Sequence record: OK905446.1 | Strand: one strand, 5' to 3' | Length of the DNA: 64,000 nucleotides | Shown here: piece after piece, positions 14,655 to 62,920 of the stretch | Position numbering within the stretch: position 1 is the first letter of the stretch | How the letters are laid out: every line of letters begins with the position of its first letter | Made by a program: the position numbers and the translations under genes | The notes under the pieces: generated by a model | What the model was told of the DNA's origin: nothing | What the model saw: the letters and a program-made list of their open reading frames with translations, nothing else | The model's database searches: none

Positions 14655-14927
14655 TTATAGATTATGTTTCTGTTTGATCTGAGCAACGCTTACAGAAAGA
14701 GCAGCGGAGAATTTCGCTTCTAATGTTTCTAGCGTATCATCTAGTGATACAGTAGCTAAACACATCGGATCAAGCATAAAAGTCACTTTATTTTCGTCGT
14801 ACGATTTGATAGTCAAGTCTTCATCTGGGAAGATCATGAACTCGTTTGACCAGAAAGCGAAAGACGTAGCAGGGCAGTCTAGCATATCACGTACAGTTGT
14901 GAAGCGAATTGATTCAGTAATCATCAT
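14655..14927 (-). CDS. Hypothetical early protein
   Basis: Starts immediately after cassette copy 2. Confidence 0.75.
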   Translation of the reverse strand: MMITESIRFTTVRDMLDCPATSFAFWSNEFMIFPDEDLTIKSYDENKVTFMLDPMCLATVSLDDTLETLEAKFSAALSVSVAQIKQKHNL

Positions 14928-15004
14928 AATGTTCTCTCTTAGTTAGTCGATGTCGTTTCGATGTAGCTATAATACGAAAAAAGGGCTGCCGAAGCAACCC
15001 CTTT
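14925..15004 (-). promoter_or_regulatory. Terminator/early-promoter cassette copy 2
   Basis: TTGCTT(14992-14997)-17-TATTAT(14969-14974); leader almost identical to copy 1; hairpin terminates the upstream late operon. Confidence 0.85.
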
Positions 15005-15021
15005 CTTTAAAATAATCGAAA

Positions 15022-18609: not shown

Positions 18610-18849
18610 TTATTTATACGTCTGGTTATCAACAAATCGCTTTAATTCAGGCAGGTGACCAATGTATGTATCACCGTGCATGGCAAGCGGTACTCGAATA
18701 TTACGAACACCACCAAGCTTTCTATGCAATTCGTCGATGTCAGATTGAGACTGCAACTCGATTACAGTATACGGGACGTTTTTGAACTTACAGAGGGAGA
18801 TAGCGTGACGACAGCCGTCACAGTTAGGAATTGTGTATATCGTTATCAT
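18610..18849 (-). CDS. Glutaredoxin/NrdH-like protein
   Basis: IYTIPNCDGC (CxxC), VP motif, YIG. Confidence 0.88.
   Translation of the reverse strand: MITIYTIPNCDGCRHAISLCKFKNVPYTVIELQSQSDIDELHRKLGGVRNIRVPLAMHGDTYIGHLPELKRFVDNQTYK
18611..18618 (-). promoter_or_regulatory. Late promoter TATAAATA
   Basis: Exact gp55 consensus 60 bp upstream of gene 24. Confidence 0.85.
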
Positions 18850-18867: not shown

Positions 18868-18896
18868 ATTATACGGCTATCAAGGCGGTTCTTAAA
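18868..18896 (-). promoter_or_regulatory. Promoter TTTAAG-17-TATAAT (TTGTTTA context) next to the 9-bp array
   Basis: -10 at 18868-18873, -35 at 18891-18896. Confidence 0.7.
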
Positions 18897-18903
18897 CAAT
18901 TTT

Positions 18904-18968
18904 ACTAATAACTCTAATATTACTAAAACTACTAATTCTACTAAGATGAGACGGAATTTTTCCACCTC
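18904..18968 (-). repeat. Five 9-bp-periodic TTAGT cores plus a 21-bp palindrome (copy A)
   Basis: ACTAA at 18904, 18913 (TCTAA), 18922, 18931, 18940; palindrome 18948-18968; inverted copy at 61493-61557. Confidence 0.9.
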
Positions 18969-18974
18969 AAACCT

Positions 18975-18995
18975 AAAAAAGCCCCTTTCGGGGCT
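18975..18995 (-). terminator. Intrinsic terminator after the SprT-like gene
   Basis: AGCCCC-GAAA-GGGGCT-TTTTT. Confidence 0.8.
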
Positions 18996-19937: not shown

Positions 19938-20444
19938 TTAGATCTCGTTTTTGCTTCTTTCTATAATATCTTGAGCAATTTCAATAACTTCTTCGTATGT
20001 TAGAGAGCCGATTGTGATAGAACCAGTGCCTTTGTGACCTTTCAGAATCTTTTTATTTGCATAAAAATTGTTCAGTTCTTTGTTGCTGAAGTTCTTAGTA
20101 CGAATATTAAGCTGGTGATTAACAACACCGCCAATGAAGTAGAAGCGTAGACCTAGTTCTTCGATTTCAAGACCTGGCTGAGATTCGCGAATGAACCACT
20201 GATATTCAGTAAAATCACCGTTTAGACGCGCTAGATTCTCTTCTGCGGTAGGCAATGCAATCTTCTTGCTTGCTGCACGTACTTTCGCTGTACGCTTCGT
20301 TTTAGCAGCTTTCATTGCTTGTTGACGTAAGTCAGTCAAGAAATGCGAACGACCTTTCTCGTCGATAGCTTGAAAACCGTTTGCTGCAACTGTCATGTTG
20401 AAGTGTGCTGCTACTTGCGCGTTAGTCATTGATTGTGCATTCAT
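19938..20444 (-). CDS. Hypothetical early protein
   Basis: Follows a cassette variant at 20442-20517. Confidence 0.75.
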   Translation of the reverse strand: MNAQSMTNAQVAAHFNMTVAANGFQAIDEKGRSHFLTDLRQQAMKAAKTKRTAKVRAASKKIALPTAEENLARLNGDFTEYQWFIRESQPGLEIEELGLRFYFIGGVVNHQLNIRTKNFSNKELNNFYANKKILKGHKGTGSITIGSLTYEEVIEIAQDIIERSKNEI

Positions 20445-20517
20445 AATTGTTCTCTCTTTGTTAGTAGAAGTCGTTTCGATGTAGCTATATTAGGCGATGT
20501 TTTAGCCAACACGCAAC
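20442..20517 (-). promoter_or_regulatory. Early-promoter cassette variant (TTGCGT...TAATAT plus conserved leader)
   Basis: Leader GCTACATCGAAACGAC...CTAACAAAGAGAGAAC shared with copies 1, 2 and 5. Confidence 0.7.
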
Positions 20518-20566
20518 CATTTTGTTCAAAAAAGTTTAAAATAATTTCAACGGGTGTTACGAGCAT

Positions 20567-22252: not shown

Positions 22253-22279
22253 AAAAAAGGGAGCAATTTGCTCCCTTTT
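22253..22279. terminator. Bidirectional terminator between convergent late genes
   Basis: A6-GGGAGC-AATTT-GCTCCC-T4; near-identical one at 62893-62920. Confidence 0.85.
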
Positions 22280-22282
22280 CTT

Positions 22283-23164
22283 TTATCTAATATCTTCTAG
22301 TTCATAGCCCCAGATATTACTAAAATCTTCTTCGGATTCGACGTAATACAATGTATCTTGCTCACACAAAATCATATCACCTGCATCAAGCACCGCGCCT
22401 TTTTCCGAAATTTCGAATGTACGACCAGTTTTAGTTTTAACCGTAACATCACCTAGCATTGATAGCCAAATCTCAGCCGAATCTAAGTGGTTGAACTTAC
22501 CACGCGGAGTCGTTGCTTCAATGTGAATAACATCACTTGATTTTCGTTCTATGTAAACTCGACCGTGTGGTAATGCAAATCGAATGTAATCACCGTCGTT
22601 GTCTAGCCAGAATAACTTAGCCCATGTGAATGCATTGGTATTCGGGAAAATGACGTACGTTAGTTCTTCGTCCTTTTTAATACCGTCGTTGTGCAGTCTG
22701 CGAACTTTCGGCGGGTTATTGTTCTTAACCGTGAAGCTATTTCCCATAACGTGAACCGTGTAGTTCATCTTGCTTGCATATCGCTCTGCCATACGCTTGT
22801 ACAGTCGGAAACGTTTGTCTGCATCGTTGCGGTCTTCATCTGAATACGCACTGAACGTAATCTCATCTGGGTGAATTTCAGAGGCTTTTTCAAACGTAGC
22901 AGCTAGGATTGTACTCAATACTGTCATTGCATCTTTAGGCGAACCCTTTGCAAGCGTGTGCGTCCAATTACCAGTTTCGCGGTCTTTTCGTTGGAATGCT
23001 ACATATATGCTTACACCGCGTGGCGTGTCACGGTCTTGAATCGTTGCCATGTATTGCGTACCGCCTACTGTGAAACTAGCTTCATTGTGCATAGCATCCC
23101 ATCTGTATGGAACAGGTCGGTCGAACGCTTCAATTAACGTTTCGTCGTGTTCAAAAATAATCAT
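22283..23164 (-). CDS. Late-expressed hypothetical protein, putative internal head protein
   Basis: N-terminus ...TLIE/AFD resembles the gp21 cleavage site of Alt (LITE/LFD); TATAAATA upstream. Confidence 0.65.
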   Translation of the reverse strand: MIIFEHDETLIEAFDRPVPYRWDAMHNEASFTVGGTQYMATIQDRDTPRGVSIYVAFQRKDRETGNWTHTLAKGSPKDAMTVLSTILAATFEKASEIHPDEITFSAYSDEDRNDADKRFRLYKRMAERYASKMNYTVHVMGNSFTVKNNNPPKVRRLHNDGIKKDEELTYVIFPNTNAFTWAKLFWLDNDGDYIRFALPHGRVYIERKSSDVIHIEATTPRGKFNHLDSAEIWLSMLGDVTVKTKTGRTFEISEKGAVLDAGDMILCEQDTLYYVESEEDFSNIWGYELEDIR

Positions 23165-33297: not shown

Positions 33298-33627
33298 TTA
33301 ACCCTCAAATGATTCAACAAGACGGAAGATTTCGTAGTCAGCTTTTGATGCTGCGCGCCAATGACGAAGTGACACTTTACCGGCTGCTTTGATTTTATCA
33401 ACTAACTGAGCTGATTCGTAACCTGGCCATGCACACGCTTTTTCAACTTTAGTGCTCCACAGTTTGCGACTTTCACAATATGAACCTTTCGCATCAAGAA
33501 ACAGTACTTCGTGCAGCATGATTGTACCGTCTTCAAGCTGCATTGCTACTTTTTGGTGTTCTGCACCGATAGAGTAAACGACTTTGATTTCAGCAAATGT
33601 GATGTCGAATTTAGTTAGGTCAGTCAT
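33298..33627 (-). CDS. Hypothetical early protein
   Basis: Directly after the cassette at 33625. Confidence 0.75.
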   Translation of the reverse strand: MTDLTKFDITFAEIKVVYSIGAEHQKVAMQLEDGTIMLHEVLFLDAKGSYCESRKLWSTKVEKACAWPGYESAQLVDKIKAAGKVSLRHWRAASKADYEIFRLVESFEG

Positions 33628-33704
33628 AATGTTCTCTCTTTGTTAGTCGATGTCGTTTCGATGTAGCTATAATACGCGAAAGGGCTGATCGAAGTCAACC
33701 CTTT
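33625..33704 (-). promoter_or_regulatory. Terminator/early-promoter cassette copy (TTGACT-18-TATTAT)
   Basis: About 50 bp identical to copy 1; hairpin GGGTTGAC-TTCG-ATCAGCCC. Confidence 0.85.
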
Positions 33705-34456
33705 TCTTCAAGAATATTCAAATTATATTTCGGCTTCATGTAATGACTCATGTTTGCACAAATGAAATCACATGCCCAATTCTTGGTAAGCCGTGTAATT
33801 GTCTTCTTCAACGCATGATTCCACGCATTCAACGGCATCATACCATGAACGATATAACGCTCAATGGCAATAACCGTAATTTCTTCGTGGAACAGATTGA
33901 TTTTGTCTTCGAATGACAACTGTTCGAACTTCTCTTTACTGACTAACACATCACATTCGTCTTTGAGAATTTTCTCATACAACGGGCGATTTGGTGCAGC
34001 AACCATTCGATGTAGTTCATCGTGATTGTACACGTATCGAACCTTGTCATTAAAGAAATCGTCTGCATCTTTGTTCAAACACAGATAGTCTTTATTGCCA
34101 AGCTCTTTTCGCCAGTGATTTGTCAACGCTGCGTATAGCTCAGGCTTGATTTTGCAGAATCGCGACAGCGCAATAACATCACGCTTATGCTTGTCCCACA
34201 ATGTCGAACCACCAAACTGACTATACCCGACTTTATGCTCATCCCAACCAAGATGACTGCACTTAATCGTATAGATTTCGTCAGCAGTTGCTATATCACC
34301 GTCGAACATCTGCAAAATGTGAACGGGAATGACGATGAAATCATCCCCGTCGTTAGCCGAGTCGGGCGAGTCTACGAATACATCCAGATCTTTAATGGTC
34401 TTACGCAGGTGAATCCCATGATGATGCAACGCAGTTGACCCGACAACAATACGCAT
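33695..34456 (-). CDS. Putative Pol-beta-type nucleotidyltransferase
   Basis: N-terminal IVVGSTAL...KDLDVF (GS...DxD). Confidence 0.6.
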   Translation of the reverse strand: MRIVVGSTALHHHGIHLRKTIKDLDVFVDSPDSANDGDDFIVIPVHILQMFDGDIATADEIYTIKCSHLGWDEHKVGYSQFGGSTLWDKHKRDVIALSRFCKIKPELYAALTNHWRKELGNKDYLCLNKDADDFFNDKVRYVYNHDELHRMVAAPNRPLYEKILKDECDVLVSKEKFEQLSFEDKINLFHEEITVIAIERYIVHGMMPLNAWNHALKKTITRLTKNWACDFICANMSHYMKPKYNLNILEEKG

Positions 34457-45043: not shown

Positions 45044-45424
45044 CTAGCGTCCAACAGCCGCCCGAACCCAACGACCTGTCAACTGTTTGCGGTAATATTT
45101 GCTACCCGTTGTAGTCGTGATCATTTTCATTGTTTTTGAAATCTTAGCGATCTCACCGTCGGGACGACTGTCACCATTGAAAGCATAGCTAACTTCATCA
45201 CCTACGCGTGGCTTTTTGATGATGTCAAAGCGAGGTGAACAACCCGCACCAGAATCAGTTACCATGTAAAGCTCTTGATCAAGCATGTTACACACTTCAG
45301 TTGCACGCTCTAGCGTAGACCAATCCCAACGAGATTGCACGTTGTGACCGTCTTTTACGCGCCATTCTTCAGCTACTGAAAACTCGTCTGTGGTGCTGCA
45401 TGTAGTTAAGTTGATGTATAGCAT
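45044..45424 (-). CDS. Hypothetical early protein
   Basis: Follows a cassette variant at 45422-45497. Confidence 0.75.
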   Translation of the reverse strand: MLYINLTTCSTTDEFSVAEEWRVKDGHNVQSRWDWSTLERATEVCNMLDQELYMVTDSGAGCSPRFDIIKKPRVGDEVSYAFNGDSRPDGEIAKISKTMKMITTTTGSKYYRKQLTGRWVRAAVGR

Positions 45425-45497
45425 AATTTTCTCTCTTAGTTAGTCGATGTCGTCTCGATGAAGTTAATATTACGCTCTTCGATTTTCGTTTGCAACC
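45422..45497 (-). promoter_or_regulatory. Early-promoter cassette variant (TTGCAA...TAATAT/TATTAA plus conserved leader)
   Basis: Leader CATCGAGACGACATCGACTAACTAAGAGAGAA. Confidence 0.7.
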
Positions 45498-45540
45498 TTT
45501 ATTTTCTATAAAAACAAAAAAAGCGCCCGAAGGCGCTTTC

Positions 45541-61449: not shown

Positions 61450-61470
61450 AAAGCCCCATGGGGCTTTTTT
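61450..61470 (+). terminator. Intrinsic terminator after gene 35
   Basis: AAGCCC-CAT-GGGCTT-TTTTT. Confidence 0.75.
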
Positions 61471-61492
61471 TGTACGCGAAGCAAAAAGGTAA

Positions 61493-61557
61493 GAGGCGGA
61501 AAAATTCCGTCTCATCTTAGTAGAATTAGTGGTTTTAGTGAAGTTAGTAATATTAGT
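61493..61557 (+). repeat. 21-bp palindrome plus five 9-bp-periodic TTAGT cores (copy B)
   Basis: Palindrome 61493-61513; TTAGT at 61517, 61526, 61535, 61544, 61553. Confidence 0.9.
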
Positions 61558-61567
61558 GAGATTCTTG

Positions 61568-61596
61568 TTTACAGAAACCCGAATGATATGTATACT
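61568..61596 (+). promoter_or_regulatory. uvsY promoter TTTACA-17-TATACT
   Basis: TTGTTTACA...TATACT, 20 bp upstream of the uvsY ATG. Confidence 0.75.
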
Positions 61597-61616: not shown

Positions 61617-62030
61617 ATGAAGCTACAAGATTTAAAAGCACAATACCATGAAGACGTTAAGATCGATACGACTGCACTAGAAACAGCAGCCGTACGCATC
61701 CCTGTTCTTCATGCAAAGTGGCTTGCATATCGAGCCGATGCAAGACAACTTCTTATTAAAGCTGAAATGAAAATGGAAGCTGTGAGAAAAGACCGCTGGC
61801 TCTTTTATAGCGGCAAACACGATGATGAAGTTTGTGATTTCATCGTTGAGAAGAGTGAAATGAAGTACGCACTTGCAGGTGATGAATATCTACAAGTTGC
61901 GATTGCTCGTTTCCAACACATGAAAGATACGTTGTCTTTCATCGAAGAGGCTTTAAAAGGCATTAGCCAAATGGGCTTCACAATTAAACACATTATTGAT
62001 AACAGAAAAATTGAGAGTGGCATAGTATGA
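61617..62030 (+). CDS. uvsY: Recombination mediator
   Basis: EDVKID...LHAKWL...FYSGK...KSEMKYALAGD...GFTIKHIIDNRKIESG. Confidence 0.95.
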   Translation: MKLQDLKAQYHEDVKIDTTALETAAVRIPVLHAKWLAYRADARQLLIKAEMKMEAVRKDRWLFYSGKHDDEVCDFIVEKSEMKYALAGDEYLQVAIARFQHMKDTLSFIEEALKGISQMGFTIKHIIDNRKIESGIV

Positions 62031-62780: not shown

Positions 62781-62891
62781 ATGAGCAGAGATCGCAAACG
62801 AGATCGAGGGTTCTTCGATTGGTTATTTTATCCAATTGAATTATTGTTTGAGATAATCGGTGCGATTCTCTCGGCAATCTTTTCTGACTAA
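62781..62891 (+). CDS. Small membrane peptide (36 aa)
   Basis: MSRDRKRDRGFFDWLFYPIELLFEIIGAILSAIFSD. Confidence 0.5.
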   Translation: MSRDRKRDRGFFDWLFYPIELLFEIIGAILSAIFSD

Positions 62892-62892
62892 T

Positions 62893-62920
62893 AAAAAAGG
62901 GAGCTAATTGCTCCCTTTTT
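62893..62920. terminator. Bidirectional terminator
   Basis: A6-GGGAGC-TAATT-GCTCCC-T5 between convergent genes. Confidence 0.85.

Follow-up and report, generated by a model that had tools for sequence, protein, structure and literature searches.

The first 64,000 bases of the genome of Vibrio phage VS1 (OK905446.1; 248,270 bp, unannotated, Schizotequatrovirus), a KVP40-like relative of T4, hold between gene 35 and uvsY one copy of a 70–95 bp noncoding module, hereafter the cassette, in which a small hairpin is followed by five to seven 9-bp repeats of the TTAGT type. The same module is found at six places in the genome and at the same gene junctions in phages of two genera, with a conservation above that of the coding DNA around it, and the conclusion that it is real and selected for its sequence is well supported. 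As to its function, we tentatively favor, with a probability of about 0.3 for the statement as a whole, an autonomous protein-bound DNA array with a genome-level role in replication initiation or replisome loading, an RNA or transcription-coupled element being nearly as likely. In structural terms, the cassette is a variant of promoter/stem-loop cassettes and iteron-like arrays that is not described in the literature searched. Throughout, "the window" denotes the whole stretch of bases 1–64000 of VS1.

Six copies at fixed loci in two genera

The copy upstream of uvsY had been noticed in an earlier note on the window, which listed a terminator, a palindrome, five 9-bp repeats and a promoter, and a direct check of the sequence finds all of these in place, with TTAGT cores following one another at an exact 9-bp period (Table 1). 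The gene names used there are also right, since the annotated KVP40 genome has the order 34, 35, uvsY and the corresponding region of VS1 is 83.5% identical to it. A second copy, inverted and upstream of nrdH, spans 18968–18900 (the first spans 61493–61561) and keeps the order terminator–hairpin–array–promoter, as had been said. Where the note had about 45 bp recurring with one mismatch, the closest 47 nt of the two copies carry 2 mismatches (33 nt are identical and are followed by one mismatch), and the full inverted repeat of 80 nt (18895–18974 versus 61487–61566) is 84% complementary. Chance is excluded as an explanation of the arrays, because the pattern TTAGT-N4-TTAGT-N4-TTAGT with at most 2 mismatches is matched 7 times in the window, always within the two cassettes, when 0.26 matches are expected and 0 of 100 shuffles reach 7.

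The number of two copies had to be corrected to six per genome. Scanning whole genomes for five cores at the 9-bp period indeed gives exactly six loci in VS1, at 18944(−), 61517(+), 87751(−), 114092(+), 170467(−) and 223615(−), and the hairpin core GGAAAAATTCC and five-unit arrays occur in this genome only at these six cassettes. The scan covered five genomes from two genera, namely VS1, KVP40, D480, VH7D, whose copies were taken from IMG/VR, and nt-1, which is classified in a separate genus, Mylasvirus. KVP40, D480, nt-1 and VH7D hold six arrays each, and the junctions at which the cassettes sit are identical in all five genomes: 35/uvsY, KVP40.0061/nrdH, gene 3/gene 1, gene 12/wac, KVP40.0135/0136 and KVP40.0251/0252, the last of which is the locus of a lipoprotein-like gene (Pfam: lipoprotein signal). 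All six copies run parallel to both neighboring genes in every scanned genome. Three of them stand at the boundary of a late structural operon (35, 3, 12) with the following gene, several lie inside conserved structural or replication gene blocks, and indels are present at two loci. When the cassette was used as a blastn query, 51 records were returned, Vibrio phages without exception and mostly with six places per genome; departures from this number are 7 in 1.081.O (MG592456.1), 5 in D482 and D490, and 4 in F86.

A scan of bacterial genomes gave three chance matches and no true cassette, and as none of these matches falls in Vibrio, the cassette is not a host element. Two cassette patterns run against IMG/VR recovered true copies only in the KVP40 and VH7D entries, the remaining matches being due to chance; one of the latter, the TTAGT-rich L018, was discarded as a contig of 25% GC that lacks the hairpin. 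The generic pattern TTAGT-N4 x3-TTAG proved too loose for metagenomes, where the 80 loci examined were unrelated microsatellites or coding repeats, and a search of IMG/VR for further relatives on the basis of UvsY returned only KVP40, VH7D and distant phages at 25–29% identity. We found no description of the cassette in the literature searched, which did not include the original KVP40 genome paper, and a literature search for the literal motif returned no relevant paper.

With regard to conservation, the hairpin and five units of VS1 are 0.81–0.99 identical to those of KVP40, D480 and nt-1 (mean ~0.90), when the 300-nt coding flanks in the same comparison are 0.54–0.93 identical (mean ~0.78), and a further comparison of the cassette with the surrounding region gives 95.6% versus 83.5%. 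Noncoding identity thus exceeds coding identity across two genera, and the cassette is accordingly under purifying selection. The search of the genome and its relatives for TTAGT-N4 arrays that the earlier note had proposed has led to six syntenic loci, shared by two genera and better conserved than coding DNA. The six copies are separated by gaps of 26–56 kb. Compared with six random points, the probabilities of a minimum gap at least as large, of a maximum gap at most as large and of a coefficient of variation at most as high are each ~0.005 in four complete genomes, which represent one observation as these genomes are syntenic, and for a statistic picked after the data had been seen.

The hairpin, the repeat unit and their surroundings

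The anatomy of the cassette was derived from an alignment of 32 copies (31 distinct sequences), and the unit statistics from the 150 units of the first 26 copies. The common layout consists of a start at AGCGAAGCG, a gap of ~10–14 nt, the hairpin, ATC, and five to seven units. The TTAGT core put forward as the repeat is present, but the real unit is the 9-mer TTAG-T-R-R-W-A. The four TTAG positions do not vary, as follows from the way the copies were collected; position 5 is T, A or G in decreasing order of frequency, positions 6 and 7 are purines in 98% and 87% of the units, A/T fills position 8 in 93%, and A predominates at position 9. C occupies 10 of the 750 variable unit positions on the sense strand, versus 182 for G. 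Unit 1 is the best conserved (TTAGTAGWA in 30 of the 32 copies), the spacers diverge in the distant phages 1.081.O and D480 with the cores kept, and the number of units varies by whole units, through both gains and losses. Most of the 32 cassettes have GCGAAGC at a similar offset, but the 7-mer is not specific to them, as the genome contains it 51 times elsewhere.

The hairpin fits better with a base-paired structure than with a palindromic protein-binding site. In the alignment, 88.9% of the stem cells are paired and CGGAA/TTCCG is nearly constant, and three copies (gene 1 in KVP40 and VH7D, 0136 in VH7D) carry GGCCCAA...TTGGGC, that is, two adjacent G-C to C-G flips, a covariation that amounts to essentially one event, perhaps spread among copies by gene conversion. 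Most copies have an AAA loop, a single one has TTA and another AA, and one copy is devoid of the two A-T pairs. Pair 10-24 is a G.U in 16 of the 31 distinct sequences, to which the VS1 nrdH copy adds a U.G, and these pairs exist in the sense strand only. A palindromic operator for a dimeric protein, considered by eye, was ruled out by the symmetric G-C/C-G flips, the 2- or 3-nt loops and the altered loop sequence. Folded as RNA, the sense cassette reaches −22.9 kcal/mol (z −5.65) versus −8.3 for the antisense, and the array alone folds weakly (z −2.2); in single-stranded DNA, the hairpin attains about −6 kcal/mol, and neither strand of the array forms a structure. The best matches in an Rfam 15 search attained at most 22 bits, with thresholds of 50–114, and all fell on the terminator or elsewhere.

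A coding role of the cassette was rejected, no frame being open in all the phages compared. In D480, a 53-amino-acid "hypothetical protein" (VPHD480_0031, L203 365–526) is annotated across the terminator, hairpin and array of the uvsY cassette, and looks spurious because its frame is conserved in neither VS1 nor KVP40; a "hypothetical protein" is likewise annotated under the cassette match in many OZ-series records, in which the cassette-spanning open reading frames (ORFs) are probably spurious. As for the opposite strand, the antisense hairpin of the lipoprotein locus (L004 20475–20487, +) has a T-rich tail, CCTCTTTGGTTTATTT, and was flagged as terminator-like, and by eye the antisense hairpins at uvsY, gene 1 and wac have similar T-rich tails; the cassette might additionally stop antisense transcription.

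The uvsY, nrdH, gene 1 and wac loci have a strong terminator 6–35 nt upstream of the cassette and an early-type promoter downstream, so that the order terminator–cassette–promoter holds at four loci; the order is variable at 0136, and the lipoprotein locus has neither signal. An early-type promoter lies 0–23 bp downstream of the array at five of the six loci in every scanned genome, and the last unit extends into the −35 at uvsY and nrdH, as in TTAGTGTTTAA. The array is directly flanked by the hairpin on one side and by a promoter, a terminator or a start codon on the other. For uvsY, the scan gave the promoter match TTTACA-17-TATACT a score of 10/12 (61568–61596); this promoter, in which no Mot box is found, is near the early consensus TTGYVH-N17-TAWWAT without matching it strictly (the strict-pattern scan listed neither promoter of the window), and it transcribes away from the AT-rich array that lies upstream of it. 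No AT-rich unwinding region and no DnaA boxes common to the six loci were seen by eye. The distance from the array start to the −35 is 49–52 bp at nrdH and uvsY, 61 in 1.081.O, 63 at wac, 73–76 at gene 1 and 66–77 at 0136, where it differs by lineage (66, 74 and 77 bp). As this spacing varies, even within one locus, a stereospecific contact with the promoter is unlikely, and VS1 has at least 23 promoter-like sites of the form TTGTT(T/G)A-N19-TAnnnT, with an array at only five of them. At four or five of the six loci, the cassette, with a terminator upstream and a promoter downstream, thus falls in a stretch that is for the most part untranscribed. Overall, it is well supported that its function depends neither on a fixed distance to a promoter nor on a fixed position in a transcript.

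The two remaining loci depart from this arrangement. At 0136, in VS1, KVP40, VH7D and nt-1, the cassette comes directly after the upstream stop codon and is followed by a long hairpin and T6 in which a TTGACA −35 is embedded, and in D480 the terminator precedes the cassette; the upstream flank of this locus is 54% identical between VS1 and KVP40 and 90% identical between VS1 and nt-1. At the lipoprotein locus, where the scan found neither terminator nor promoter, the upstream ORF ends in or beside the cassette, and the last units, TTAGGAGTA TTAGATG, constitute the ribosome-binding site (AGGAG) and the start codon in the five genomes, in nt-1 for a different gene. The lipoprotein-like gene is indeed absent from nt-1 (genome position 51325, L227 ~1325, compared with VS1 L004 19714–20418), and there the last cassette unit, TTAGAATGA, gives the start codon of the next gene, which puts the endpoint of the deletion or replacement exactly at the cassette edge.

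The features of the two copies in the window are collected in Table 1. Across the six loci, the annotated neighbors of the cassette are uvsY, nrdH, gene 1, wac, 35, 3 and 12. The gene served by the cassette and promoter of the 0136 locus in VS1 (L005 22949–23476, −) encodes a very acidic 175-amino-acid protein without Pfam match, and the 190-amino-acid ORF that comes next, with an NPPF motif (L005 22376–22948, −), has a counterpart annotated as a DNA methyltransferase in KVP40 and nt-1; together, the two may form an anti-restriction operon.

Table 1. Features of the uvsY copy and of the second, nrdH copy of the cassette, in window positions.
Feature	Position	Strand	Remarks
Intrinsic terminator of gene 35, AAAGCCCCATGGGGC and T-run, in full AAAGCCCCATGGGGCTTTTTTT	~61450-61471	+	Flanks the cassette, outside its conserved core; listed by the scan on the minus strand only (61467..61450), plus-strand reading with T-run by eye
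GCGAAGC motif, 10 nt upstream of the hairpin, AGCGAAGCG in most copies	61476..61482	+	5' edge of the shared sequence
Hairpin GAGGCGGAA-AAA-TTCCGTCTC, 21 nt, inner stem CGGAA/TTCCG	61493..61513	+	Imperfect, with a G.T pair at position 4
ATC linker between hairpin and array, end of TCATC	61514..61516	+	Alignment columns 26-30 invariant, in part circularly, as the collecting pattern demanded TCATC
Array of five 9-bp units, TTAGTAGAA TTAGTGGTT TTAGTGAAG TTAGTAATA TTAGTGAGA	61517..61561	+	TTAGT starts at 61517, 61526, 61535, 61544, 61553
Early-type sigma-70 promoter of uvsY, TTG-TTTACA-N17-TATACT (TTGTTTACA from 61565)	61565..61596	+	Adjoins the cassette, outside its conserved core
uvsY, downstream gene	61617..62030	+	ATG at 61617; identity from KVP40 annotation
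Intrinsic terminator of the upstream SprT-like gene, second copy	18980..18995	-	11 nt ahead of the second-copy hairpin
Second-copy hairpin GAGGTGGAA-AAA-TTCCGTCTC	18948..18968	-	G.T and T.G pairs, sense strand only
Second-copy array, TTAGTAGAA TTAGTAGTT TTAGTAATA TTAGAGTTA TTAGTAAAA	18900..18944	-	Five units
Second-copy early-type promoter, TTG-TTTAAG-N17-TATAAT	18868..18899	-	Directly abuts the array
nrdH-like glutaredoxin ORF, downstream of the second copy	18849..18610	-	Genes 24 and 55 next

Relation to known elements

Arrays of short repeats are bound by ribbon–helix–helix (RHH) or winged-helix proteins in several well-known systems, such as MetJ with its 8-bp metboxes, omega with its 7-bp heptads, ParR/parC and TubR/tubC. 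Four or more contiguous direct repeats of 7–12 bp, a short invariant core, an off-helical period that goes with a spiral filament, and often a place near a promoter make these arrays resemble the cassette. However, the gene of the binder is normally adjacent in such systems and the array serves its own locus, whereas the six cassettes are dispersed and no gene of this kind is among the neighbors examined. Classical iterons measure 12–22 bp, and the 9-bp units of the cassette are shorter but similarly form a cluster of evenly spaced direct repeats. We also compared the units with DnaA boxes, IHF and CRP sites, sigma-54, sigma-E and sigma-32 promoters, the late-promoter TATAAATA, ops/RfaH elements and HUH nonamers, and no match was convincing.

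Elements that act as RNA offer other points of comparison. In the mRNA operator of T4 gene 32, a 5' structured element is followed by a repeated, unstructured tract of the UUAAA type that reaches the ribosome-binding site, and a folded element with a ~45–60 nt repeat tract running into the Shine-Dalgarno and AUG is exactly the layout of the lipoprotein locus; at the other five loci, in contrast, a promoter and sometimes a terminator separate the array from the gene. The nut sites of lambda and put sites of HK022 are anti-termination RNA elements located just downstream of the promoters they serve. They share with the cassette a small conserved hairpin, an A-rich loop, orientation dependence and a low number of copies per genome, but most cassettes follow a strong terminator and precede the local promoter, and nut and put have no tandem 9-nt array.

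Among phage elements, stem-loop cassettes of the PeSL and PmSL kinds, reportedly also the subject of work by Arbiol in 2010, are found in T4-like phages. In nt-1 and KVP40, the PeSLs are made of a terminator-like stem-loop, a generally AT-rich region, a TTGYVH-N17-TAWWAT promoter, a Shine-Dalgarno and a start codon, and were linked to indels by Comeau, Arbiol and Krisch 2014 (PMC4122927); the parts of that account drawn on here mention neither a second hairpin nor a 9-bp repeat. The cassette is similar to PeSLs in being intergenic, in having at most of its loci a terminator upstream and an early promoter, a Shine-Dalgarno and a start codon downstream, and in the changes of gene content between nt-1 and KVP40-type phages at its edges. 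As a matter of detail, a PeSL-type A3-4G3-loop-C3T3-4 stem-loop lies upstream of the cassette at four of the six VS1 loci (at 0136 it comes after the cassette, and the lipoprotein locus has none), and a promoter-like site with an approximate fit to the sigma-70-like PeSL consensus is present at five of the six, the exception again being the lipoprotein locus. On the other hand, PeSLs as described are numerous and concentrated in hyperplastic regions near indels, whereas the cassettes are exactly six at fixed loci; moreover, the cassette adds a second, non-terminator hairpin and a strict 9-bp array, and may lack a terminator or a promoter.

The window contains other repeats of this general type. 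A family of five 87-nt copies on the minus strand (151–237, 14924–15010, 20442–20528, 33624–33710 and 45421–45507) consists of a terminator stem-loop that holds TTGCTT in its stem, with TATTAT 17 nt further on, and of a conserved leader of ~40 nt, CTACATCGAAACGACATCGACTAACAAAGAGAGAACATTATG, with an ACATCGA direct repeat, ending at the start codon, and it matches the "PmSL" Mot-box-type cassette (Comeau 2014). In addition, two symmetric terminators 40 kb apart (22254–22285 and 62889–62920), one of which is located between the uvsY operon and the convergent uvsW, are 91–93% identical and read AAAAAGGGAGC(A/T)AATTGCTCCCTTTTT.

As to replication origins, T4 fires at least five of them simultaneously, which have no motif in common and one of which is at uvsY, and its oriE has evenly spaced 12-nt repeats, syntenic in relatives and suspected of binding an initiator (Kreuzer and Brister, PMC3016281). 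The cassettes resemble these repeats in being short, direct and evenly spaced and in keeping syntenic positions among T4-type genomes; they differ from oriE, a single locus near gene 5 with 12-nt repeats, in being contiguous 9-mers with a hairpin at six loci, none of which is near gene 5. The position of one cassette directly upstream of uvsY, in association with a promoter, recalls T4 ori(uvsY), or oriF. There, however, a MotA-dependent middle promoter transcribes into a downstream unwinding element, whereas here the promoter is early and the array lies upstream of it.

Candidate functions and their meaning

In the reading that we favor, the cassette would be an autonomous, orientation-dependent, cis-acting DNA site, at which one protein would bind the TTAG-T-R-R-W-A units head-to-tail, with five to seven protomers per site, in a complex adjoining the small GC-rich hairpin-forming repeat; since a 9-bp period falls short of one helical turn, the chain of protomers would wind around the duplex in a spiral. 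Set at regular intervals along the 248-kb genome and in the direction of transcription, the six complexes would act at the level of the whole genome, and our committed guess for this function is replication initiation or replisome loading, in a phage that would have several origins like T4 but with a shared motif; the adjacent promoter, which fires outward, could supply the negative supercoiling that opens the AT-rich array. Contiguous repeats with an invariant 4-bp core, degenerate flanks and gains or losses of whole units have the usual shape of iterons and operators, hinting at a site for an oligomerizing protein, and the untranscribed gaps, the flipping position of the terminator, the even spacing and the precedent of T4 with its multiple origins, including one at uvsY, incline us toward a DNA-level role at the scale of the genome. 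The independence of the cassette from transcript structure argues in the same direction, since an RNA element would be expected to hold a fixed position in the transcript. The restriction of the arrays to the six loci, their conservation, the independence from the promoter and, in single-stranded DNA, a stable hairpin next to an unstructured array also count in favor of this reading. The protein-bound, iteron-like array proposed in the earlier note stands as far as its conserved, repeated and iteron-like nature is concerned, and it probably binds a protein; for the broad claim of a protein-bound DNA site, we would put the odds slightly below even. That the sites are origins is a doubtful proposition in itself, and the narrower version, in which the six cassettes would be sites of replication initiation or of strand-specific loading or nicking, with one motif recognized by a dedicated hairpin- and TTAG-binding protein, is at least as doubtful.

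Several observations weigh against this reading. The flips, the G.U-type pairs restricted to the sense strand and the variation in loop length point to a single-stranded form, and an imperfect 9-bp stem would make a poor cruciform in duplex DNA. The co-orientation with transcription and the scarcity of C on the sense strand fit a role in RNA as well, and the array of the lipoprotein locus certainly forms part of an mRNA, for which it provides the ribosome-binding site. T4 origins have no common motif, and the best known of them require an upstream promoter that transcribes into the unwinding element, the opposite of the arrangement seen here; with regard to an origin of the T4 ori(uvsY) type, the promoter is an early sigma-70 one, is not Mot-box dependent and fires away from the array. 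Pfam matches in six flanking ORFs of the 0136, lipoprotein and nrdH loci are SprT-like, lipoprotein signal and weakly MmcB-like, and include no DNA-binding, Rep-like, RHH or wHTH (winged helix–turn–helix) domain. The evenness of the spacing was recognized post hoc and could reflect the recombinational loss of closely placed copies. Finally, GC/AT skew and cumulative skew show no shift at the cassettes, which counts for little because skew in these phages follows transcription and gene orientation.

Many of these points would find a natural place if the cassette acted in the sense transcript, as a hairpin followed by a C-poor (UUAGURRWA)n tail on which an RNA-binding protein or a nuclease would settle, the possible roles being a processing or stabilizing site, a conditional attenuator, a processive anti-terminator acting on read-through polymerase, or a translational operator. 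Such an RNA-level or transcription-coupled element, to which we give about one chance in four, would explain why each of the six cassettes points the same way as its neighbors in all the scanned genomes, why the hairpin is strong in the sense strand only (−22.9, z −5.65, against −8.3) and why it tolerates G.U pairs (16 of 31), a U.G pair, G-C/C-G flips and AAA, AA or TTA in the loop, as well as why the units are nearly free of C. It would also suit the lipoprotein locus, where an intercistronic cassette without terminator or promoter ends as AGGAG and start codon, and the 0136 locus, where in four genomes the cassette is in the 3' untranslated region ahead of a terminator-like hairpin, and a tandem with a terminator in either order would be compatible with a back-up terminator or an anti-terminator. 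Yet four or five of the six loci have an intrinsic terminator 6–35 nt upstream and a promoter downstream, the position relative to transcript ends is inconsistent across loci and lineages, the array by itself folds weakly (z −2.2), no Rfam family matches, and even spacing around the genome is unexpected for a gene-specific RNA element.

Another possibility is that a phage or host factor bound to the array activates, represses or insulates the adjacent early-type promoter, for instance in such a way that the uvsY, nrdH, gene 1, wac and 0136 promoters might be kept active or silent after AsiA has remodeled sigma-70, or that late read-through might be blocked. The promoters 0–23 bp downstream at five of six loci, the overlap of the last unit with the −35 at uvsY and nrdH, the three cassettes where a late operon (35, 3, 12) meets the next gene, and the fact that KVP40 encodes AsiA with no known MotA analogue (Nolan et al., PMC1524935) are consistent with it. 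In the annotations, asiA is KVP40.0295 in KVP40, VPHD480_0353 in D480 and VPFG_00344 in nt-1, and motA is annotated in none of these three. This proposal is nevertheless rather unlikely: the array-to-−35 spacing ranges over 49–77 bp and is lineage-dependent at 0136, where a terminator-like hairpin intervenes, a promoter is missing from one locus, only five of at least 23 promoter-like sites of this type have an array, and the hairpin with its covariation is given no role. The same facts, apart from the last, weaken the suggestion of the earlier note that the array serves an activator of this promoter class, which is the weakest part of its interpretation. More improbable still is a recombination module or selfish dispersed repeat related to PeSLs, which would mainly promote modular shuffling through ~90 bp of homology and would have no trans-acting factor of its own. 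It would have in its favor the position shared with PeSLs between stem-loop and early promoter (PMC4122927), the shifts of gene content at the edges (loss of the lipoprotein gene in nt-1, 0136 flank at 54% versus 90%) and the variants GTCTC/GCATC and GGCGG/GGCCC common to paralogous copies, which suggest gene conversion. Neutral homology would, however, drift, when cores, hairpin and linker are held across two genera above the level of coding DNA; the six copies at fixed syntenic loci give no sign of recent spread, and the 9-bp periodicity, the core that never varies and the compensatory changes in the stem mean that the sequence itself is under selection. Last, and least probable, unit 1 could be an internal unconventional promoter, with TAG(A/T)AT as its −10, the hairpin in the −35 or activator position and the other units as a 5' leader, which would account for the superior conservation of unit 1 (TTAGTAGWA, 30 of 32), for a scan match within the nrdH copy (TGGAAA-18-TAGAAT), for the promoter-less lipoprotein locus, with a leader of ~35 nt ending in AGGAG-ATG, and for the position right after terminators. 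Most copies, though, have no credible −35 or extended −10, two lose the key −11 A (TGGTAT and TTGAAT), the scan called no promoter for the lipoprotein locus, and the proposal leaves unexplained both the stem covariation and the need for five to seven periodic units; a conventional sigma-70 promoter inside the cassette, looked for by eye and by scan, was not convincing either.

KVP40-type phages, the model "schizo-T-even" group, are employed in work on the biocontrol of Vibrio, and to our knowledge their replication origins are unmapped. In this regard, a noncoding module conserved more tightly than the genes around it, at the same six places in two genera, regularly spaced and polar, must matter, and whether it proves to be an origin, an insulator, an RNA operator or a recombination hotspot, the outcome would be a named cis element for the biology of T4-type phages. 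Its recognition would keep annotation pipelines from calling spurious ORFs across it, and, being small and sharply defined, it is directly testable by ordinary phage experiments. If the origin reading were true, the six cassettes would be the first sequence-defined set of origins in a T4-like phage and a handle on how the replication of 250-kb genomes starts, and they might also bear on the partner of AsiA in phages without MotA.

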